Shown here piece after piece: positions 7,028-44,292 of a DNA stretch of 64,000 nucleotides; the first letter of the stretch is position 1; the number at the start of each line of letters is the position of its first letter. Below the pieces are notes generated by a model. The model saw only the letters and a list, made by a program, of their open reading frames with translations, had not been told where the DNA came from and searched no databases. The stretch covers positions 4,216,001 through 4,280,000 of the forward strand of contig CATNEN010000030.1 of the NCBI GenBank assembly GCA_950097015.1. The letters are read 5' to 3'. This stretch comes from Macrostomum hystrix. Lineage: Eukaryota; Animalia; Platyhelminthes. Both the position numbers and the translations under genes were made by a program.

Positions 7028-9612
7028 ATGGACTCCTGGAACAGCTACCAGCCGCACCAGCACCATCATCACCATCACCATCACATGCATAATCTGCACG
7101 CGGGTGTTCAGTCGCAGTTTGGCTACCCGATGCCGGAGGTTACCACTGCGGGCGTCATCAGCGGCGGCGGCAGCGTCGGCAGCGGCGGCTTGTTCGGCTG
7201 CTCGAGCATTGCGGACAACTCGGAGCTCAACGGCCTTTGCGGCGGCGGCGGATTTTCTAACACCCCGATGACACCGAATTTGACAAACTCGGCAGCGGCT
7301 GCTGCGGCGGCCGCGGCGGCGCAGGCGCATCACGAGATGCTGCACCATCCGGCCCTGACGGCCTATGCCAGTGAGTTCCGCTAGGCTTTACTTCTCTCCT
7401 CTCACTCTACTTCTCTCCTCTCACTCTACTTCTCTCCTCTCACTCTACTTCACTCCTCTCACTCTACTTCTCTCCTCTCACTCTACTTCTCTCCTCTCAC
7501 TCTACTTCTCTCCTCTCACTCTACTTCTCCCTCTCACTCTACTTCACTCCTCTCACTCTACTTCTCTCCTCTCACTCTACTTCTCTCCTCTCACTCTACT
7601 TCTCTCCTCTCACTCTACTTCTCCCTCTCACTCTACTTCACTCCTCTCACTCCCCCTATTACCCTCTAAAATATAGCTGCATTGCTTATAAGCAGGTGAT
7701 AATTTTCTCTGCCCTGCGCACTTCAAATTTACTGTGAAGGTCGTGCAAACTCTCCGCCATTAGGGTGATTACCGCGCTCCATTCCCTGCCCACGTATTCA
7801 CCAAGCCATCAGTGTGATTAATCCCGCGCAATAGCTTAATCAGTGCCGAGACGGCACTCGACCCAATCGCCATCGGCGTCTAAAGTCTTGCGCCCGGCCA
7901 TTCTCCTTTGCCACGAATCGTTTCAATCTCGCAGCCGTTTGAATTCGCCCTCAAGCCACAAGCGAACTTGTTAGAATGATTAACTTTTTTTCTCGCCGGT
8001 GGGATTTCTTCATGAATCAGGTGGGATTTCTCGGACCACCTGAACCGGAGCGCCGACACCGGGAAGGGCGGGGGGCGGGGGCGGGCAGGGGGCGGATTCC
8101 AGGGCGGGGATTAGCCATCAGCGGAGAGTAGGCAATATTTTTGTGCGACCACGCGATCGTTCTCAGAGAGAGCCCGATGCTCACAAAGCATTCTTAGCAC
8201 TTCAAAGTAAAGGGTGGAGGCTGGTAGGGCAGGGAGGGGGAGGGGAGCGCCGCGTGTCGCCGCTCACGCGAGGCCGCTCACTCCGCTAAGCCGTCGGTAA
8301 TCCCGAATTGAAAGTATCGCCGAGCCGTGAAAATTCAAGTGGGGCGAAAAAGCCATCAATGGAGGACGGCCGCTGCTACCTGCCACAGCACCCGGCGGTG
8401 CCCCCCCGCTGCTTGTTGACTAACAGCGGCCACCTGGGACAGCTGCCTGCCCGGCAGACAAAGCAAATGAAAGAGCCACAGAAGCTCTCGAGGGCCCCCT
8501 TGTTTCTTAGAAAAGCCATTAGCTCATTCAGCCGGATTCCTGTTACAAACCAGCGGCATGCCATGAAACAATCCGATGGGGAGGGTGCTAAAGGTGATCG
8601 GGCTGCCGCACACCTTTGAATTCTTGAGACTAATTCCAACCGATCTCGATCTCACCTTCCAGCGCCCGTCCGCAAGCAGCGGCGCGAGCGGACGACCTTC
8701 ACCAGGGCGCAGCTGCAGATCCTGGAGGAGCTGTTCGGCAAGACCAAGTACCCGGACATCTTCATGCGCGAGGAGGTGGCGCTGCGCATCAACCTGCCGG
8801 AGTCGCGGGTGCAGGTCTGGTTCAAGAACCGGCGGGCCAAGCAGCGCCAGCAGCAGAAGCAGAAGGAGGCCGGCGAAAAGGCCAACGCGCACTGCGGCCT
8901 GCCAGCGAACTCCGGACAGTCGATCGGACACGGCGGACATTCTGCGAAGACGGCCGCAGGCTCAGTCGGAGGCGGCGTCGGCGCGACAGCTGCGGGAGGC
9001 GGCGGCGGCTGCGGAAACTCGCTGGCCGCTGCTGCAGCCGCCGCGGCCGCCGCCGGCATCGGGGGCGGAGGAGCCATGGCTGTCGGTGACATGCTCGGCG
9101 GCTGCCACCACGACGGCGGCCTTGCACTCGGCGGAGTCGGCGGCGTCAAATGCGAGGACGTCGACTCGAGCAGCCCGTCACCCGCCAAGACGCTCAGCCT
9201 GCCCGGCTCCGCCGAGGCCTCCAAGCGCAGCCCGGCAGCCCAGGCCAACGGCCACGCCGCCGCCGCTGCCGCCGCCGCTGCCGCCCACTTCCTCACCAGC
9301 GACTCGTCCGGCCACTCGGCCGCCGCCTGGGGACCCTCGGCTGCCGCCGCTGCCGCCACCTCCGGCCGCCTCGGTGGGCCGGCCAGCCCGCCGACCTCCG
9401 CCTACGCCAGCTGCGTTCAGCAGCAGCACCGCAGCGCCGCCGCCGCTGCCGCCGCCGCAGCCGCAGCCGCCGCCTACCACAACCAGACCTACGGGCAGTA
9501 CAGCGCCACCGGCTACCCTCCATACGACTACCTGCGGCCCTCCGGCTACCCGCAGCAGCCCACGGACTATGACTACCAGGCCTGGTCCTCGCGCAAGCTG
9601 CAGCTGCTCTGA
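7028..9612 (+). CDS. Otx: Otx-family homeobox protein, copy A; exons 7028-7370 and 8663-9612 (~430 aa)
   Basis: A phase-1 GT-AG intron (7371-8662) restores [63 protein letters not shown], the Otx K50 homeodomain. The intron sits at the conserved Otx pre-homeodomain position. His- and Ala-rich tracts; AATAAA at 10002. Confidence 0.93.
7388..7650. repeat. Minisatellite, 19 bp pyrimidine unit CTCTACTTCTCTCCTCTCA, in the Otx A intron
   Basis: Direct tandem repetition. Confidence 0.93.
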
Positions 9613-12600
9613 GCTGCTGTACTCAGTGGCATCCTCAAAATGGTCTGTGCTCGCTCACGTAGGCAATTACAGCTTTTATTCTATGATTTTGACACCAGCA
9701 ATCAAATCGTATTATCTTTTGTCTCCTTTCATTTTGCTGATTTTGAAATGCTCTTTTTGTTCTCTTTCTGATTCTGTTGTTTTGTCCACATTGAATTAAC
9801 ATTTTTTCCTAGAACTTTCTCTGCTGCTTTCTTGTGTGTACAAATTGAATGCAAGCTATAATCCGCGAACCCTGCAATTGTTAGTAGAGTCCAAAATGTC
9901 TCATGTACTGAACAGAAGAAAGTTCACCGAATTTTCGTTTTTTTCACGTTTGTTTTGGTTGATCGCCTAGTTGATATTAAATCCAATGGACGATAATTAT
10001 AAATAAAAGTGCATCTCGAAAAGCTTCTTAATCAAGCTCTTAAGCTCGAATATAGAAAAAATACTAAACGTTAAACATGCACTGATTGAGTTTTTACTCA
10101 ACTGATCAACGGATCAGCTGATTTGGGGAGCAATGGGATCTCAGGGGAGGTCACTAGGATCAGCTGATTTGGGGAGCAATGGGATCTCAGGGGAGGTCAC
10201 TAAGGATCAGCTGATTTGGGGAGCAATGGGATCTCAGGGGAGGTCAATGAGGATCAGCTAATTTGGGGAGCAATGGGATCTCAGGGGAGGTCACTGAGGA
10301 TCAGCTGATTTGGGGAGCAATGGGATCTCAGGGGAGGTCACTGAGGATCAGCTGATTTGGGGAGCAATGGGATCTCAGGGGAGGTCAATGAGGATCAGCT
10401 GATTTGGGGAGCAATGGGATCTCAGGGGAGGTCACTGAGGATCAGCTGATTTGGGGAGCAATGGGATCTCAGGGGAGGTCACTGAGGATCAGCTGATTTG
10501 GGGAGCAATGGGATCTCAGGGGAGGTCACTGAGGATCAGCTGATTTGGGAGGTCACTGGGAATCAACTGATTTGGGGAGCAATGGGATCTCAGGGGAGGT
10601 CACTGAGGATCAGCTGATTTGGGAGGTCACTGGGAATCAACTGATTTGGGGAGCAATGGGATCTCAGGGGAGGTCACTGAGGATCAGCTGATTTGGGAGG
10701 TCACTGGGAATCAACTGATTTGGGGAGCAATGGGATCTCAGGGGAGGTCACTGGGAATCAACTGATTTGAGGAGCAATGGGATCTCAGGGGAGGTCACTG
10801 AGGATCAGATGATTTGGGGAGCAATGGGATCTCAGGGGAGGTCACTGAGGATCAGATGATTTGGGGAGCAATGGGATCTCAGGGGAGGTCACTGAGGATC
10901 AACTGATTTAAGGAGCAATGGGATTCCACTGAGAGTTAACTCACGAGAGGTCAGAAGTTAGTCATTTAATGTTCTCAATCGCTGACCATGAGAATTAGCA
11001 AGAGAAGAATTTATGTTTTAACGCGTTTGAGTAGCTAACTGACTTATTATTTATTTTATGTCAAATATAGAAGCCTGGTGCAAAAAGTTAATTAAGTTTT
11101 AAATAGATTTTTCTATATAAAAAAAGAAAAAAAATTGCATTTCTACTGTATACCGTAAAATCCCCTAAACACTAGAGAACTAGAAAACTAAGCAAAACAG
11201 ATTGGGAACAGGGCTACACACGACAGCAAATGGATGAGGCGAGGACAGCTGTAAAATCCTGCCATAGAATCATTAATTCACCAACAATGAGTGTCAGCTC
11301 ACTTAAGTAATAAATATTACTTAGACAACACACAAGCAGCTAAATCTATAGGCACAGTTACCTTTGCGAACTGTACAGTCAAGTGCGTAATCTGCCCCAG
11401 TAAAATCTATATTGCCTGCATGGGGGAAATAGCATTGGGTGAATTGGGAGGGGAGCATGAAAAGGAATTTAGAATCGCACGAATCGCAGTTGGATACAAA
11501 GGGCATTGCTCAGATGCGAGAGATCAGCAAAGTATTCTAATATGCTGACAGTGACGAATGCGCTGCAAATATTGCAATAAAAAGGACTTGTGCTTGCTAT
11601 ACATTACAATAGACAAAACACGAACAGCGAAATCACAAGAGAACAAAGAGTTTAATGTCAGTTAAGAGCAGCTCAGACTGTCTTAGAATTGAGTACAGCA
11701 GCTCAGAGCAGCTGCAGCTTGCGCGAGGACCAGGCCTGGTAGTCATAGTCCGTGGGCTGCTGCGGGTAGCCGGAGGGCCGCAGGTAGTCGTATGGAGGGT
11801 AGCCGGTGGCGCTGTACTGCCCGTAGGTCTGGTTGTGGTAGGCGGCGGCTGCGGCTGCGGCGGCGGCAGCGGCGGCGGCGCTGCGGTGCTGCTGCTGAAC
11901 GCAGCTGGCGTAGGCGGAGGTCGGCGGGCTGGCCGGCCCACCGAGGCGGCCGGAGGCGGCGGCAGCGGCGGCAGCCGAGGGTCCCCAGGCGGCGGCCGAG
12001 TGGCCGGACGAGTCGCTGGTGAGGAAGTGGGCGGCAGCGGCGGCGGCAGCGGCGGCGGCGTGGCCGTTGGCCTGGGCTGCCGGGCTGCGCTTGGAGGCCT
12101 CGGCGGAGCCGGGCAGGCTGAGCGTCTTGGCGGGTGACGGGCTGCTCGAGTCGACGTCCTCGCATTTGACGCCGCCGACTCCGCCGAGTGCAAGGCCGCC
12201 GTCGTGGTGGCAGCCGCCGAGCATGTCACCGACAGCCATGGCTCCTCCGCCCCCGATGCCGGCGGCGGCCGCGGCGGCTGCAGCAGCGGCCAGCGAGTTT
12301 CCGCAGCCGCCGCCGCCTCCCGCAGCTGTCGCGCCGACGCCGCCTCCGACTGAGCCTGCGGCCGTCTTCGCAGAATGTCCGCCGTGTCCGATCGACTGTC
12401 CGGAGTTCGCTGGCAGGCCGCAGTGCGCGTTGGCCTTTTCGCCGGCCTCCTTCTGCTTCTGCTGCTGGCGCTGCTTGGCCCGCCGGTTCTTGAACCAGAC
12501 CTGCACCCGCGACTCCGGCAGGTTGATGCGCAGCGCCACCTCCTCGCGCATGAAGATGTCCGGGTACTTGGTCTTGCCGAACAGCTCCTCCAGGATCTGC

Positions 12601-35284: not shown

Positions 35285-36003
35285 CCAGAGAGTGCTCAGT
35301 CTGATCACTCATCATGACGAACTCCATTCGATGTGTTCTTTGCTCTACATAGCTTGCTTCCCCATAGAGAGGCGAGATTGTCACTGTCAGGCAGTTGAGC
35401 TGCTTTGTCAGTGAAAGCTAAATTATATTGCTACTTAAAAAGGCTTCATCTAAGAGCTGCACGGCTACCCGTGCAGGTATAGACAAATTCAAATGACTGG
35501 CAAAGTAATAATCATCCACCGTAATGATGGGCTGCTTGGCTGTGGTGAGCAGGAATTATCTTGCACCGAATCCGACCAATATCCACTCCCGTATGCTAAA
35601 CACTTGATCTAATACGGGCATATCGTAACGCACGTTTTTGACGCGTGATATTTCCTAACTGATTTTTACCTCTTATTGTTTTATCAAACAGACAGATTCT
35701 ATGCACACTGACAGAGGCCGTAAGAGACCAAAAAATGAAACGCAACGTATCCAACGTGATATATCTGTACACTATTTTGATTTTATCTATTACAGACATA
35801 ATTGATGTGCTGTTTTGTTACTACTCGAACATCCGCTAAACTCCTATGTTTTTTAAGTAGAAGCCCAATATTAAATAGATTTACAGGAAACACCGAATTT
35901 CAAGTCAATGCATGAATTATATTCTAAATTCTTTGTAACATTATCGCTCTTCCGGGCAATAAAGGGCTTAAGTGTATCAAGTGTCTAAGTTATTGTTGCA
36001 TGG

Positions 36004-36725
36004 CTGTCTGAGGTGCTGGTGCAGGGAGATCTCAGGTGCTGGTGCAGTCAGGTCTGAGGTGCTGGTGCAGGGAGATCTCAGGTGCTGGTGCAGTCAGGTC
36101 TGAGGTGCTGGTGCAGGGAGATCTCAGGTGCTGGTGCAGTCAGGTCTGAGGTGCTGGTGCAGGGAGATCTCAGGTGCTGGTGCAGGGAGATCTCAGGTGC
36201 TGGTGCAGTCAGGTCTGAGGTGCTGGTGCAGGGAGATCTCAGGTGCTGGTGCAGTCAGGTCTGAGGTGCTGGTGCAGGGAGATCTCAGGTGCTGGTGCAG
36301 TCAGGTCTGAGGTGCTGGTGCAGGGAGATCTCAGGTGCTGAGTGCAGGGAGGTCTCAGGTGCTGAGTGCAGGGAGGTCTCAGGTGCTGAGTGCAGGGAGG
36401 TCTCACGTGCTGATGCAATGAGGTCTCAGGTGCTGAGTGCAGCGAGGTCTCAGGTGCTGATGCAATGAGGTCTCACGTGCTGATGCAAGGAGGTCTCAGG
36501 TGCTGATGCAATGAGGTCTCAGGTGCTGAGTGCAGCGAGGTCTCAGGTGCTGATGCAATGAGGTCTCACGTGCTGATGCAAGGAGGTCTCAGGTGCTGGT
36601 GCAATGAGGTCTCAGGTGCTGATGCAATGAGGTCTCACGTGCTGATGCAAGGAGGTCTCAGGTGCTGGTGCAGGGAGGTCTCACGTGCTGATGCAATGAG
36701 GTCTCAGCTGCAGGGAGGTCTCAGT
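36004..36725. repeat. Minisatellite, 23/46 bp unit GAGGTGCTGGTGCAGGGAGATCTCAGGTGCTGGTGCAGTCAGGTCT and variants
   Basis: Direct tandem repetition between the convergent ROPN1L and TFIP11 3' ends. Confidence 0.94.
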
Positions 36726-37180
36726 TGCTGGTGTAGTGTAACATTGGTTGCTGATGCGATGGGATTCAATTGGTTTTAGGGAGTCCATGCAGTGGATATT
36801 TTTAAAGTGCAAAAGGCTCCCAAAGCTACAAGTGTAGTAGAACCGGAGGGAAACAAAAAAATGAAGACATCTTGTTGAACTAAATAGACACATCTTTTTG
36901 ACTTGCGAGTATCAAGGAAGCAAGTACCTCGTAGCTACCTCGCACATATGCATATGATGAAGCATACACAACGAATGACATTGTATTTAACAAGCATATC
37001 AAAATAGCGGATTCAATTAAATTTAATTCAAATTAAAGTCAACAAGAAAGAAGGCGGATGCGAGTCGACTATCGCACAGGATTACAAATTAGATAATAAA
37101 TTTACACACAACAGTTTTCAAATGCCATTGCCAGTTGTACGTACTTGGGGTCTGATAAATAATAGTGGAATCCAGTCTAT

Positions 37181-40100
37181 TCAAGGCCGCAATGCCCTAT
37201 TTATGACATCGTCAAGCGAGACGGGATCCCAGCGACCGTCATTCAGCAAGTAGATGACGCCGCGTTCCACGCACACGGGGACGTGACCGAAGTTGAAGAC
37301 CTGCTTGCCCTGATGCCGGCGGCCAGTCGGGGCGAACACCAGGCCGCGGTCCTGGGCCCTGCGCTCCAGAAGGTCCCGAAGGCCGGTCAGGCCGTGGTTA
37401 TAGTTCAGCACGGTGGCCGGCTGGGCAGAAGCGGCTAATCCGCTGCTAGCGGAGGCGGCAGCCGCAGCGGCCGCAGCTCCGGCGGCGACCACAGCGGCCG
37501 GGTCCTGCCCGGAGAAGGCCGAGTCCATTAGGCGGAGGGCCTGGATGGAAAGCGGAATGAACAGTTAGGCATGGCCAAGTCGAAATTCCATTGGCCTACA
37601 TGGCTAATTATCTAAACTCTATAGTGTTGCAGTCACTTGAGTAAGTGATTGAGTAGTTGAGTAGACCCTAGTTAATTCTTGGATAACTAAACAGACTACA
37701 GAAGTGATATTTTGACAATCATTAGTCCATCTAAAAAACCCTGCGATAATCCGTCTAACCACTAAAGTATCCCACGATAATATATTAAGTAATCCTACTA
37801 TAATCCCGTAAGTGATTCTACGATATCCACCAAGTAATCTTACGATAATACATCAAGTATTTCGATGATATTTAATTAACTAATCGTACGATTATCCATA
37901 GAGTAATCCTACCATAATCCATTTATTAATCCAACGATAATCCATCAGCCAACAGAAGCACTACTGTTGCTAACCCATCCATCAGTACCTGTCCAAGCTG
38001 GTGCTGCACTCCGGGCAGGTCCAGACAGGCCGGTGGCAGCTGGTCCCGCCAGCCGGCGTACCAGGCGGTGACCTGGACCATATCAGACCCGGGCGAGGCC
38101 AGCCAGGCAGCCAAAGCCCGATGGAATCCCGGGAAGAAGCCGCGCTCTAGCATGGAGGCAACCTGCTGGGGGCTGAGCAGGTCCCACCAGGCCTTGCACC
38201 AGGCCCACTGGTCCAGCGGCTGGCCAGACGGATCAATAGGCATGCCGGACAGGCAGTCCGTGAGCTTGGGCAGCACATGGCGCTGGAGGAAGGCGGTGAG
38301 CAGCTGGGGGCGGACGGCGCCTCGCCAGGGAGCCAGAACCTCGCGGGCGCTCAGATCGCTCGGATGCCACTGGCCGAAGCATTGGCCAAGCTTTTGTAGC
38401 ACCTGTTGGAGAAGCAGTTCTGAGTTTTCGTGATGCGAATAGGGAAATTACCTAATTAAATTTCTCTGAATCGATATTATTAACCAAGTTAGAAATATAA
38501 ACGTAGAAGAAAGAAAAAACTAAATTCACAAAAAACGGTTATGAAAATTATAATCGACTGATTAAAAAATATAATATTTAAAAAGACAACCCAGTTGGGG
38601 CAGGTGTACAGCCAATTGTCCATGGACACATACCCGAATTTCTACCACATCTAATGCTGGTACCCAGGAGGGTGAGTGGTACAGCGGTTAAAGCGTTTGC
38701 CTCTCGCAATAAGGTTCCTGAGCTGCTCGATTCCGCAGCGAGACCACATTCATTTGGGGCGCAGCCGCAGAGAGAAGTCTTGGGGGCTTGTCGTGCAATT
38801 TATGCCCTTGATGGCCAACCTCCAAGGCACAGTGAGATGTACACTGCCTGACGATGAGAAAGCCGTGGCAGATTTACACACCTGTATCTGTGTGCGTGTG
38901 TGCTCAGGAGTCAGCGAAATAGGCAGAATTGCCTCCTCGCTGGCTGCGGGTCTAGCGTCACCAAATGATGTGCCATTGCCCGCAGCCCTCCTGCACTGAT
39001 GTCCACTTTACAGCTTGATGAACTGAAGCGAAGCGAGTGGAATAAATTGCGATAGCAATCATGCTTAAGGACAGGGTTGAGAATCGAACTCCGGACCACC
39101 TGATTAGGAGTCTGTGAGCGCTAGCTACTAGGCTACAACTACTGTGGATAGTACAATTTTCAAAGAATGCGAATTTGAAACCTGGCGCACCTGTTCGTGC
39201 ATGGAATCCAAAGGCAGCTCAACAGACCAGGGCTGCAGCCACTCGTGCACAGGCTGGGGATCCCTAGTCGGATCCCAGAGTTGCAGCTCGCGCTGAAGCG
39301 CAGGAGCCACAATGGTGCTAAGCAGATCCTCAACGCCGGGCAGGTAACCGCGCAGAGCCTGAACCAGGGCCAGCGCCTCAGCCGGCTGCCTTGGACTCCA
39401 CTGAGCCAGGGCTCGGCGAACCTGCGGCAACAGCGACTCGGTCAGGATGGCGTCGGCCGCTTCGCCGCCCTGGGCCGAGCCAAAAGCGTCGCGCAGCAGC
39501 CTGGCACAGGCGGCGCCGCGGCCGGGCTCCAGCAGCGGCTGCCAGCCGTCCAGGCCGCGCTTAACAGCCGGCGTTACCATGGCAGCGGCCAACGGTCGAT
39601 ACTGGGCCGGAGCCGATGATAGAAACTGCCTGGCCAGGGTGCAGACGTCAGACAGGCTGGCATCATTAGCAACGGCGGTCTCGTAGGTGTCTAACAAGCG
39701 AATGAGGCCGTCTAGTTCGGCTAGCTGAGTGGCCCGCCGGCCGCGTTGAAGTCGCTGAGTTTCGGCTCTGAGGCTGGCCATCTTGTCCCGATCGTCGCGC
39801 ATCTGCCTGTCGGTGCGCACAATTTCAGACTCGGCCGCGTCGGCTAGGCGGGCCAGATTGTGCATCAGGGCCGGACAGTCGAACCTGCGCTGCTGCTGCT
39901 GATCGTTTGGCGCGGCTGAGGACGACGGCTCGTCAAAACCGGTTGAACGGGTCGCCAGGGCCGAATAGCCTTCGTAGACTCGCTGCTGCGGCCCTGTCAT
40001 GTCTATCACCTGGATGCGGTAGAATAGATCAAGGTATTTTAAATCTAGCAGTTTGTTGACATAAAATTGTTACAATTTTGTCTGAAAAATGCTTTTCCTT

Positions 40101-41555
40101 AACAATAGGAAGACCGCGCTATTCTCCTACTGCCACTGCCTACTTTACGATGGCAACCAAACCTAATGACCGATTTTCGAGAAAGTTCACCATCGTTACT
40201 TGATGAAATTTTGTGAGCAGAAAAATTATGCCTATATTGGTGGCTTTTGCCACCAGACACACTGACGAGAATCGTTGAATATCTCGACGATGCCAATGTT
40301 TTGTGATTCTGAAAGTTGTTTCAACGGATAGAGCGGAATATTTTAGCACGTGTTCTGGATTTTCATGGACATTTCTGTGAATATTTCGGGTGCATTTTAA
40401 ATACCCCCTTTGTCTTTCTACTGTTAATAAGAGTTCTAAGATCCGATTTCTAAAGACTTGTAGCCTAGTAGAGCGTCGGACTTGCGACTTGAAGGTCGGG
40501 GGTTCGATTCGCGACTTCACTGGAACAATTTGTGTCCTTTAGCAAGACACTTAACCATGGCTTCAGTTCACCCAGCTGCAAAAATGAGAATCTGTGTGGC
40601 GTCATCCAGACTGAACAGCTGTACGCAACCTTCAGATGCGCCGTTTTCAATCAATCCATTTAAACTTCTGCCCACACGGGTAAAGAACATTTCCGTGACC
40701 AACCTTAACCCTGGCAGCACCAGCCGAGGCGCCATTGTCATCGAATAACGGGACGCCACCCGGCGCTCGCTTGGCTCCGTCTCTGATGATCTCGTCTCGA
40801 CTTTTGATTGCGTATCTGGGCTCCGGCTGCTGTTGCTGCTGGCTGCGCTTGTACCGAGCCGATGCAGCCAGTGTCGCAGCTGCCTCAGTAACCGTCTCCT
40901 CGTTGCCGCGCCTCGGGGCCGGCGCCGCCTCTTCCGGATAGAAGCCGACCGCCTCCTTGCCCTTCCGCTTGGTGGCCTGCACCGGTGTGACAATGCCGGC
41001 CAGATCCTTGCCCAGGCCCTTGCCCTGCTTGTAGCCCATCTGTTCCAGCAGCTTCATGCCGATGCCGCGGGTGTGCCTCTCCCACTGGCCGAAGCCCTGC
41101 TCAGCCTGGGCCTGGTGCTGCTGCCGATGCCGGTCCCCAGAGGAGGCCGGCTTCTGCTGCCTGCGCTCGGCCTGCCGCTTCTCAATCAGCCGGACGCTCA
41201 GCAGCTCCTCGTCGCTCTCGTCGGTGATGTCGCCGCCAATGCCGTCGACGTCGCCATTGTTTTCCCCCTCGGCGTCATCGTCGCCGGCTGATTTAGTCGA
41301 CAACTGGCCGCCCTTGACGCCACCGCTAATGAAATTTATTGGACCAGCGTTGGCAGCCCCACCGCGGCGGCGGCGCCGATTGCCGAAGCCTCGCCGGCTG
41401 CTGCCGTCGCTGGAATCTTCCGAGTCGCTGGCGAACACGCCGGCCCAGGCCTGCTTCTTGGTCTGGCGCTTGCGCTGAGCCAGCGGATCCATCGAGTACT
41501 TCCAGTCTGCTCCAGTCATGTCGAAGCGCTCCATCTCCTCCTCTTCATCGTCCAT
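37181..41555 (-). CDS. TFIP11: Tuftelin-interacting protein 11 (Ntr1/Spp382 ortholog); exons 41555-40704, 40009-39191, 38402-37989, 37540-37181 (~814 aa)
   Basis: TIP_N region ([11 protein letters not shown]), G-patch [37 protein letters not shown]|[11 protein letters not shown] junction, GCFC repeats (WHPSD, W..WYAGW) and C-terminal GKQVFNFG...W.PVSL. All introns are phase-0 GT-AG; the exon 2 donor could alternatively be 39182. Confidence 0.93.
38668..38995 (+). mobile_element. tRNA-derived SINE family 2, in TFIP11 intron 2
   Basis: tRNA-like head (GTGGTACAGCGGTTAAAGCG...TCGATTCC), body shared with 19255 and 51352, 3' hairpin GGCTGCGGG/CCCGCAGCC. Confidence 0.8.
40103..40423. mobile_element. 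TTAA-flanked non-autonomous DNA element, in TFIP11 intron 1
   Basis: TTAA at 40099-40102 and 40424-40427; 12-bp imperfect TIR (10/12) CAATAGGAAGAC / GTCTTTCTACTG; interior shared with 53580-53800. Confidence 0.65.
40459..40653 (+). mobile_element. tRNA-derived CORE-like SINE family 1
   Basis: B-box GGTTCGATTC followed by TGTGTCCTTTAGCAAGACACTTAAC...CTTCAGTTCACCCAGCTG, a CORE-type motif. Confidence 0.8.
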
Positions 41556-42135
41556 GGTTTTAGCTGGTTCCTTTGCTGCTCAGTGCTGCAACGGGTAAGG
41601 GAGCGCGTGGTGCCTTCAGTTGAGAACTCGCAGTCTTAGCAGCTTAGATGCATTCGCTACTGCCTGGAGACACAGTGATGATAATACATTCAGTTGTTCT
41701 ATTATCCCTACATAACTCCGACGATCCTAACATGATCCCGACATTCCCAACACAATTCCTATTATCTCAACATTATTTCGATAAGCCAAACAATTTTCCG
41801 ATTGTTTATCCTGACCATCCCTGCAAAATTTCTTGAGACTTCTTACCTGATTAATCCCTTTATTACCCATCAGATAGATAACTGACTTAGAAGTTAGCGC
41901 TTTCAAATAAAAAAGCAATTACATTCTGTATTTAATAGCTACAATTATTTTTCCATGAAACAAAATGCTAGCAAATATTTTAAGAACATATGATAGCAAA
42001 GAAAACTTACATCGTTGAGTTTTAAAACAAATAAGTCGAAAGATTACGCTACCAATTTTAAGAACACTATTGAGTTTAGCATTGAACATCTGCAAATAGC
42101 ATGAAATATTTCATGAAGAAAATGCAATATTGTTA

Positions 42136-43259
42136 CTACTGACTGTCATCAGTAGTAGTGGCAGCGGCAGTGCCAGAAGATTGGGCATGTTCATCGACAT
42201 TCTCAGGCTGTTCAGCAGTTTCTAGATGCGATCGCTTTTGACCACCGCCGCGCGAGGTGAACATTTTCAGTAGATCTTCGGCCGTCACTTTGCGCAGCCA
42301 ATCGCCAGACGGCAGGCCGCTAGCTGTCGGCAGCCAATCACCGCTTTTTACTGCTGCTGTTGCTGCGGGTGCCGCTGCGGCGGGAGCAGACGGCGACTGC
42401 TCGCCCTGCATCCACACGGCTGTCAGACCGTCCAACAAGCCGCTAGACGCCCGCTGAACCAGCCTAGCCGCGTCCGCATGACGCCGAAATTCCACAATAG
42501 CGACACCACTACGACTATGCTTGGCTTGAATCTGCCGACTCTTAGTTGGCCGATATAATAAAGTAACAACTTCGCCATAGCTTGAGCACAATGACCTTAG
42601 TGAGGCCTCAGTGTGAATGGGCGCATTAGAATCTGAACTGATTACTTCGTCACTGTCACGCCAGATAAGCTTGATAGTAGGCAGGACAGCGTCATTCCCC
42701 TTTGGCTTGCCGGCTGCCTGTCGAATCTCCTGCCTGAGCAGCTCCTGCTCTCTAGCCAGTACTTCGCTCAGCTCGCGCCTGAGCCTCTGCTTCTCCCGCT
42801 CTAATCGGGCCTCGTCCTCCCGGCTTGATCGGCTGGCTGCACTGGCGAACGCGGCTGCCTCAGCCCGTTCCAGCTCCTCTTTGAATCGGCGACGACCTTC
42901 GCCTAGAGCTTTGGCTCTCTCGGCAGCAGCCAGACGGCCGCGCCGGACTTTATCGTAGGCTGCTCGAGCCGCCGCGTCGGTCAGCAGCTGAAGGGCTTCG
43001 GAGAGGCGGCGAAATTTTTCAGCCGCCAACGGATCGTCAGGATTCTTGTCCGGGTGCACTTTTAGGGCCGCTGTTCGGTAGGCTTTGGTTATCTAGGAAT
43101 AAAAACGATGACGACATACATTATTATTGATTAACCTAGTCTGAAATGATAAAAGTTACACTGTGTTTTAATGCCTACCTCTTTATCAGTAGCATCATCT
43201 TGCACATTGAGCAGTTTATACAAGTCTTCATTGTGTAGATGACTTTTTGCCGTCTCCAT
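42136..43259 (-). CDS. DNAJC17: DnaJ homolog subfamily C member 17 (Cwc23 ortholog); exons 43259-43179 and 43092-42136 (~345 aa)
   Basis: METAKSHLHNEDLYKLLNVQDDATDKE|ITKAYRTAALKVHPDKNPDDPLAAEKFRRLSEALQLLTDAAARAAYDK J-domain with HPD, coiled coil, then a degenerate RRM (LRSLCSSYGEV...AIVEF); 86-bp phase-0 intron. Confidence 0.92.
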
Positions 43260-43904
43260 GGCTGTTGCTTTTGTTTATTAAAAAGTGAAGTACAGGCCCG
43301 CCTAATGAAATTGATTGCAAAGCAGAGTGTTTCTCTACGTCCTGTTGAAATACTGAAATGAGAAAGCAGAGTCTGTATAAAAATAAACATATACTAGTGT
43401 AATAGTGGAAAACGCCCCTGGTCGTATTGGTTGTATAGCAAAAGTAAAAAGTTTTTTCAAGGTTAACAATATGCTTGACAGGTCTGTTTCGCATTGGTAT
43501 CATCTAAATTAAGGTAATGTATCTGAGAAAAGCGTCTATTTTTTTGCTGTTAGAAAACACAAAGAAGCTAAGTACCTTGTTACTTTTTTTATAAAAGTAA
43601 GTTATTAACTCAAACTACTATATCTCTTTCAGTTTCTATAGTATGATAGTAAATATATTACAATATGATTATAAACTTCAGACAGAAGGGTCTATTTGTG
43701 CAATTATAACCATACAGGCCATAAATTCTTGAAATTTGTTAAACATCATGTGAATATTTTCTTTATTTGATAGATATGATTATATATACTGACATATGTG
43801 ACAAAAAATATGTATATAAAGATAGACTATTAGGCTTCTGTTTGCTTGCTATATTAATAAATACATTAAATGTTGTATAACTGCACACAGTATATACAAT
43901 GCAT

Positions 43905-44292
43905 TATAATAATAATAATGATACTAGACCCAAGGGCCAGTGCAGGTGTTGTGTGTCAAGCACACTAGCAGGTGGGGACTGCACAACTATTGTACTCTCG
44001 GCTCTCTCGGACACTGGTTGACAGCCGCGTGTCAGCAATGGAATTTATTTTTTCCAAACATATCGGCAGCATCCAAACCCCACAGAATAGCCGCACAGAA
44101 CTGCTTTATTCCACGCCAGCCGGAATTATTATTACCCGACGAAATGTTGGTACTCATTTGCAGCTGAGTAGACTGTGTGCACATCAGGGCAAAGCAGCTT
44201 GCCAAGGGCTGCACGAATAGTTCTAGACTAGGTCGGGAGTCGAACCCAGGACCATCTGATCCAGAGTCCGACACCTTACTGACTGAGATATA
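43905..44292 (-). mobile_element. tRNA-derived CORE-like SINE family 3
   Basis: Minus strand: B-box GGGTTCGACTCCC, CCCTTGGCAAGCTGCTT...CAGTCTACTCAGCTGCAAATGAGTAC core-like block, (ATT)n tail. Confidence 0.7.

Follow-up and report, generated by a model that had tools for sequence, protein, structure and literature searches.

DNAJC17 and TFIP11 are adjacent same-strand genes in a Macrostomum flatworm and may form a two-gene operon

DNAJC17 and TFIP11 are two intact, expressed genes of the flatworm Macrostomum hystrix, each present as a single copy in the 220-Mb genome. They are minus-strand neighbours in the same orientation, separated by 580 bp from the DNAJC17 stop to the TFIP11 ATG, and the RNA of both carries a non-genomic leader, each at its own acceptor. 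On balance, we favour a model in which the two genes are transcribed together as an ordinary two-gene operon. The pair is probably a further example of an operon type known from Macrostomum.

The window (the whole 64,000-nucleotide stretch of DNA analysed) holds both genes on the minus strand, as the initial annotation had placed them: the DNAJC17 stop TAG lies at 42138-42136, directly followed by a TAA (42135-42133), and the TFIP11 ATG at 41555-41553, confirming the 580-bp gap. No opposite-strand gene lies between them. The pair is isolated, with XPO7 located ~9 kb upstream on the opposite strand (divergent) and an ArfGAP gene 6.5 kb downstream. The features are as follows, in the direction of transcription.

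43353-43358, minus strand: DNAJC17 trans-splice acceptor TTTCAG, with the AG at 43354-43353; fits the motif [T/C]TNCAG (PMC8629364), and the contig match ends at 43353.
43179-43352, minus strand: DNAJC17 exon 1, with 5' UTR 43352-43260, ATG at 43259 and 27 codons of the J domain; RNA joint 43092/43179.
43093-43178, minus strand: DNAJC17 intron, 86 nt, GT..AG; joint present in X4, X5 and X1 contigs, canonical ends confirmed.
42136-43092, minus strand: coding part of DNAJC17 exon 2, with HPD motif, coiled coil and RRM; stop TAG 42138-42136.
42014-42135, minus strand: DNAJC17 3' UTR, minimum extent; contigs reach 42014 (X4 rec21) and 42035 (X5 rec26).
41587-42013, minus strand: spacer outside the RNA contigs, single-copy, 33-36% GC, with ATTAAA at 41936-41931 and AATAAA at 41864-41859.
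41586-41601, minus strand: TFIP11 trans-splice acceptor CCCTTACCCGTTGCAG, with the AG at 41587-41586; its TTGCAG fits [T/C]TNCAG, and the stretch is pyrimidine-rich.
40704-41585, minus strand: TFIP11 exon 1, with a 30-nt 5' UTR, ATG at 41555, TIP_N and G-patch.
40703-40010, minus strand: TFIP11 intron 1; RNA joint 40007/40702 in X4 and X5, GT..AG placement confirmed.
39191-40009, minus strand: TFIP11 exon 2, first half of GCFC, from RNA joint and Pfam.
39190-38403, minus strand: TFIP11 intron 2; joint 38398/39187 in X4, X5 and X1, GT..AG confirmed.
37989-38402, minus strand: TFIP11 exon 3, second half of GCFC, from RNA joint and Pfam.
37181-37540, minus strand: TFIP11 exon 4, C-terminal domain, stop 37183-37181; the acceptor 37541/37540 is placed from sequence and reading frame.

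The gene names proposed by the initial annotation are supported by Pfam domains in both proteins and, for the J protein, by its best database relatives. The two-exon DNAJC17 model encodes 345 aa (frame count on the joined exons), with the start of the J domain supplied by the upstream exon (ATG 43259). Within 42136-43059(-), Pfam reports DnaJ (2.2e-09) and RRM_1 (0.0016), the latter at 18.7 bits and hence slightly below the 20.7 cut-off. The layout of the DNAJC17 family is thus present, with an N-terminal J domain containing HPD, a coiled coil and an RRM. A database search returned top named relatives that are all DNAJC17, at 35-47% identity. In a tree of 111 DNAJC17 relatives, the named members derive from arthropods, fungi and an acoel. 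An apparent sister (P0117, locus L013) proved not to be a close relative. Searches of protein collections with DNAJC17 found no near-identical protein from the RNA runs, and an exact look-up of the 51-aa TFIP11 start in protein collections gave no match.

The four exons of TFIP11 form one open frame of 814 aa (frame count on the joined exons). Pfam places TIP_N (1.2e-14) and G-patch (7e-15) on 40647-41555(-), with GCFC following on the next two exon ORFs (5e-16 and 1.4e-21). TIP_N, G-patch and GCFC hence occur in the order required of the TFIP11 / Ntr1 / STIP family. The stretch used for RNA contig mapping ended short of exon 4. At window position 41523 the X4 and X5 RNA read A where the window has G (plus strand), a synonymous TTC>TTT difference in TFIP11 codon 11 (minus strand) that probably reflects strain or allele.

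TFIP11 introns 2 and 1 contain repeats (window 38744-38995 and 40137-40700) that RNA contigs of X4 and X5 cover thousands-fold. The loose ends of these contigs read like tRNA 5' ends (...GTAGCCTAGTGGT), which suggests that the repeats belong to a tRNA-derived SINE family, abundant and transcribed. Another tRNA-like segment of this kind is present at ~44230-44285, upstream of DNAJC17. Just past the TFIP11 stop, window 36000-36800 holds a tandem array of 60% GC and ~45-nt period, with repetitive ORFs on both strands.

The RNA material consists of contigs from four runs, among which X4 and X5 are public runs with spliced contigs. These two represent RNA, since the introns checked (43178-43093, 40703-40010 and 39190-38403) are all removed in the contigs. 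The initial annotation had predicted a trans-splice acceptor for TFIP11, with the exon beginning at 41585, 30 nt before the ATG. In agreement with this, a non-genomic leader joins at exactly 41586/41585: the genome match of TFIP11 contigs X4 rec20 and X5 rec25 stops at 41586 and is followed in each by 23 non-genomic letters. DNAJC17 behaves alike at 43353/43352: the match of contigs X4 rec21 and X5 rec26 stops at 43353 and is followed by 22 and 6 unmatched letters respectively, again a non-genomic leader. Both acceptors agree with the published trans-splice motif [T/C]TNCAG (PMC8629364). At both, the contig match extends exactly one base past the exon and takes in the final G of the acceptor, as is expected of a spliced leader ending in G (...ATG).

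The spliced leader (SL) of M. lignano is 35 nt long, CGGTCTC...TTGCATG (PMC8629364). This 35-nt sequence has 23 exact copies in the present genome among 149 matches at <=3 mismatches, many of them in arrays ~11.6 kb apart, while a reversed SL control pattern had 0 matches in the same genome. The 23-24 letters retained would correspond to the amount that a k=31 assembly should keep of a leader common to >10,000 mRNAs. Position, the overlapping G, the retained length and the SL genes in the genome together make it very probable that the leader at these acceptors is the 35-nt SL. In that case, the leader letters ...CAATTTATTGCATG would be expected at 41585 and 43352, and soft-clipped sequence at both positions would read ...GAAGACTCAATTTATTGCATG. 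It is conceivable, if most improbable, that no trans-splicing takes place and that the 22-23 extra letters come from a short 5' exon joined in cis or from a chimeric assembly. Such an explanation draws on the fact that the extra letters are known by length and position, not by sequence, with three contig joints unlisted. However, the length recurs (23, 23 and 22) at two genes and in two runs, both match ends fall on consensus acceptors with the one-base overlap that fits an SL ending in G, and SL RNA genes do exist in the genome. Elsewhere in the genomic sequence, G000 C39:12667884-12685526 contains an array of >20 copies of a 35-mer that resembles the SL but has three changes (...GACTCTCTTTTTTGCATG), spaced ~927 bp apart. 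These might be a cluster of variant SL RNA genes or a repeat derived from the SL.

The 580-bp gap is single-copy in the 220-Mb genome, contains no tandem repeat, and its ORFs are short, AT-rich and <=63 aa. An Rfam scan of 41300-43600 gave no match. Up to the acceptor, the spacer measures <=428 nt if counted from the last RNA-covered DNAJC17 base (42014) and 550 nt if counted from the stop. The lack of an obvious promoter island, mentioned in the initial annotation, cannot be judged from composition, since the 33-36% GC of the gap equals that of introns here. The AATAAA reported there is indeed located at 41864-41859 (-), ~150 nt past the last RNA-covered base of DNAJC17. Its weight as a poly(A) signal did not hold up: the motif lies outside the RNA contigs and at chance level, with 0.55 copies expected per shuffled gap, and we therefore rejected it as evidence for the DNAJC17 poly(A) signal. 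The ATTAAA (41936-41931) has as good a claim to be the signal. The 3' ends of the DNAJC17 contigs (X4 rec21, X5 rec26) carry no poly(A) letters.

Trans-splicing and operons have been surveyed in M. lignano, where trans-splicing affects ~30% of genes and operons are taken to include ~15% (PMC8629364). An operon is defined there as immediate same-strand neighbours with a trans-spliced downstream gene and a repeat-adjusted distance <1 kb. In that work, closely spaced trans-spliced neighbours made up a mode of their own in the distances and were taken as operons; the spacers have a mode of ~100 bp, and 75% of operons contain two genes (PMC8629364). Precursors bearing several trans-splice sites have also been assembled from this species (PMC5730564). 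The present pair agrees with every part of the definition given in PMC8629364: both genes are on the same strand, the leader is found on the mRNA of the downstream gene TFIP11, and the unique spacer is <1 kb. The dicistronic unit proposed in the initial annotation is thus supported by the published definition, by the leader on TFIP11 and by adjacency of the genes in M. lignano, but not by a gap-spanning RNA contig, none being present among the four runs.

If the two genes form an operon, transcription would begin in the ~9 kb between DNAJC17 and the divergent XPO7 upstream of it, and continue across the pair. Cleavage and polyadenylation of the DNAJC17 mRNA would take place between about 42014 and 41840, while the TFIP11 mRNA would be capped, and its 5' end formed, when the 35-nt leader is trans-spliced on at 41585. 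Two separate mature mRNAs would result, each headed by the spliced leader.

The main competing explanation is that of two independent genes, with a TFIP11 promoter inside the 430-550-bp spacer and a short outron removed by SL trans-splicing, such that the genes are only closely packed and share no transcript. We regard this as a serious possibility, albeit not the one we prefer. As one SL serves first and downstream genes alike, trans-splicing alone does not mark operon membership in Macrostomum, and ~60% of trans-spliced M. lignano genes lie outside operons (PMC8629364). Distance also speaks against an operon: the spacer extends at least 250-430 nt beyond the poly(A) site, several times the ~100-bp Macrostomum mode, and the 300-bp threshold applied to parasitic flatworms (PMC12582326) might be exceeded. 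A further point for independent genes is that, by eye, the last ~110 nt before the acceptor look more G+C-rich than the rest of the gap. That no contig of the four runs covers 41587-42013 could likewise be taken to favour independent transcription. However, small contig sets do not sample precursors, and the introns are equally uncovered apart from their repeats, hence the lack of spacer contigs is uninformative, not negative, and says little about co-transcription. Against an independent promoter, the pair falls within the published distance limit, with the short-distance mode of that survey taken as operons. Furthermore, the spacers of the two Macrostomum species contain no conserved block and are not alignable (local alignment z 0.8, -0.8), an observation that carries little weight as divergence between the species is too high to inform. 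Taken together, these considerations leave an ordinary two-gene operon as the reading we prefer.

The same gene order is found in M. lignano. On scaffold NIVC01005127.1 (locus L010), XPO7, DNAJC17 and TFIP11 are arranged as here, with XPO7 divergent from DNAJC17 and TFIP11 following on the same strand. The DNAJC17 intron position is identical, a CTTCAG acceptor lies 15 nt before the DNAJC17 ATG, and a TTGCAG acceptor, at about position 11816 of the locus, precedes that of TFIP11. The gap between the two genes is 705 bp, of which 322 bp are a tandem array with a 42-nt period. The M. lignano assembly GCA_002269645.1 contains a J-domain fragment that is 91% identical; beyond the most conserved domains, the proteins of the two Macrostomum species are 59-70% identical. 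Non-coding sequence is saturated between the species while adjacency is kept, and therefore adjacency has outlived non-coding saturation. The NCBI annotation at L010 holds only a 90-aa DNAJC17 fragment. At L010 11852-12260, TFIP11 exon 1 has interruptions of its reading frame near 11920 and 12220, with the protein continuing in another frame; this is likely an assembly indel, or else the decay of one copy, as the chromosomes of this species are duplicated. Neither gene name was found in the supplements of two M. lignano papers (PMC5816591 and PMC5730564).

Conservation of the pair, proposed in the initial annotation as a check, was thus observed in the one other flatworm compared, M. lignano, but not further afield. 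By tblastn, TFIP11 was not found within 10 kb of DNAJC17 in the annelid Capitella, the nematode Anisakis, the acoel Symsagittifera or one compact eukaryote. In Symsagittifera roscoffensis, which also trans-splices, DNAJC17 occurs in an operon-like pair with a different partner: on OY783237.1 (locus L016), an intronless DNAJC17 begins 66 nt after a same-strand methyltransferase-like gene (9285-9935 and 10001-10939).

Set beside the M. lignano SL operons (Wudarski et al. 2017, PMC5730564; Ustyantsev & Berezikov 2021, PMC8629364), the present pair is alike in genus and in the 35-nt SL sequence. Further likenesses are a set of two same-strand neighbours that both appear trans-spliced, [T/C]TNCAG acceptors and a spacer <1 kb. 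Both genes also belong to the conserved housekeeping class that is enriched among the trans-spliced and operon genes of M. lignano. The pair differs in its spacer, which is at least 250-430 nt compared to the ~100-bp mode, and in that we infer the shared precursor here. The operons of C. elegans (Blumenthal & Gleason 2003, as cited in PMC8629364) and of parasitic flatworms (PMC12582326) resemble the proposed arrangement in having a polycistronic pre-mRNA resolved by upstream 3'-end formation and downstream SL trans-splicing. Spacers in C. elegans and parasitic-flatworm operons are ~100-1000 bp, with a mean of 233 bp and a median of 99 bp in S. mansoni (PMC12582326). In Macrostomum, by contrast, the same SL goes onto first and downstream genes, and there is no specialised leader of the SL2 type.

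A functional link between the two products is known from yeast, and the partnership of Cwc23 with Ntr1/Spp382 in spliceosome disassembly, invoked by the initial annotation, is well documented (PMC6044358, PMC12086092). Cwc23 is an intrinsic subunit of the NTR complex and binds the C-terminus of Ntr1; when Cwc23 is depleted, Ntr1 and Ntr2 are lost along with it (PMC6044358). The yeast ILS structure shows a helix of Cwc23 that stabilises the C-terminal domain of Ntr1 (PMC12086092). S. pombe has conserved the interaction, which is not essential there (bioRxiv 10.1101/2024.06.27.600868). By analogy with this literature on yeast and S. pombe, DNAJC17 and TFIP11 may bind one another in the flatworm. 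A complex prediction for the TFIP11 C-terminal domain with residues 1-235 of DNAJC17 exon 2 returned a score of 0.00, which says nothing either way. Compared to the yeast NTR complex (Cwc23, Ntr1/Spp382, Ntr2, Prp43; PMC6044358, PMC12086092), the flatworm proteins have the domain sets of their metazoan counterparts. These consist of a J domain with HPD plus an RRM for DNAJC17, and of TIP_N, G-patch, GCFC and a C-terminal domain for TFIP11. Budding-yeast Cwc23 is not known to carry an RRM, whereas the S. pombe orthologue Cwf23 and the flatworm protein have one. We know of no description of the yeast Cwc23 and Ntr1 genes as adjacent or co-transcribed.

A narrower version of the operon model would have the arrangement kept by selection, as it couples the expression of two NTR-complex partners. 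Co-transcription would then fix the ratio of a chaperone-like stabiliser to its scaffold and be kept across Macrostomum for this reason. We consider this unlikely. In its favour are the loss of Ntr1 and Ntr2 upon Cwc23 depletion, the support that the Cwc23 helix lends to the Ntr1 C-terminal domain, the conservation of the interaction in S. pombe, and the retention of adjacency in two Macrostomum species despite 59-70% protein identity. However, the unrelated divergent XPO7 is conserved alongside, hence this looks like general local synteny and not selection on the pair. Adjacency is absent in Capitella, Anisakis and Symsagittifera, and the interaction itself is dispensable in S. pombe. Neither gene name was found in the portion covered of the operon survey tables for parasitic flatworms (PMC12582326), which is weak evidence. 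Chance must also be considered: in M. lignano, ~10,458 genes lie in operons, and conserved housekeeping genes are over-represented among them (PMC8629364). With several thousand adjacent operon pairs of such composition, several partner-partner pairs would be expected per genome by chance on a rough estimate, and a single one is thus within expectation. The initial annotation called the functional coherence of the pair unusual for animal operons, but we find no support for a functional operon beyond coincidence, given the expected chance pairs and the equally kept XPO7 synteny. Co-expression of two disassembly partners would follow from an operon arrangement, with no sign of being its cause. 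A literature search found no paper linking the two animal genes by position, nor one describing the pair.

If DNAJC17 and TFIP11 do form an operon, they would be one more of several thousand in Macrostomum and would add little alone. A small extra value may lie in the pair as a test case for operon membership versus protein-complex stoichiometry in an animal, since the products are physical partners in yeasts and M. lignano is amenable to transgenesis. Counting interacting pairs across all operons of a Macrostomum genome, and setting the number against shuffled gene order, would answer the general question far better than any single pair. Were selection for co-expression nonetheless to prove true, the locus would represent a rare animal case of bacteria-like operon logic, in an organism that relies heavily on splicing and trans-splicing.
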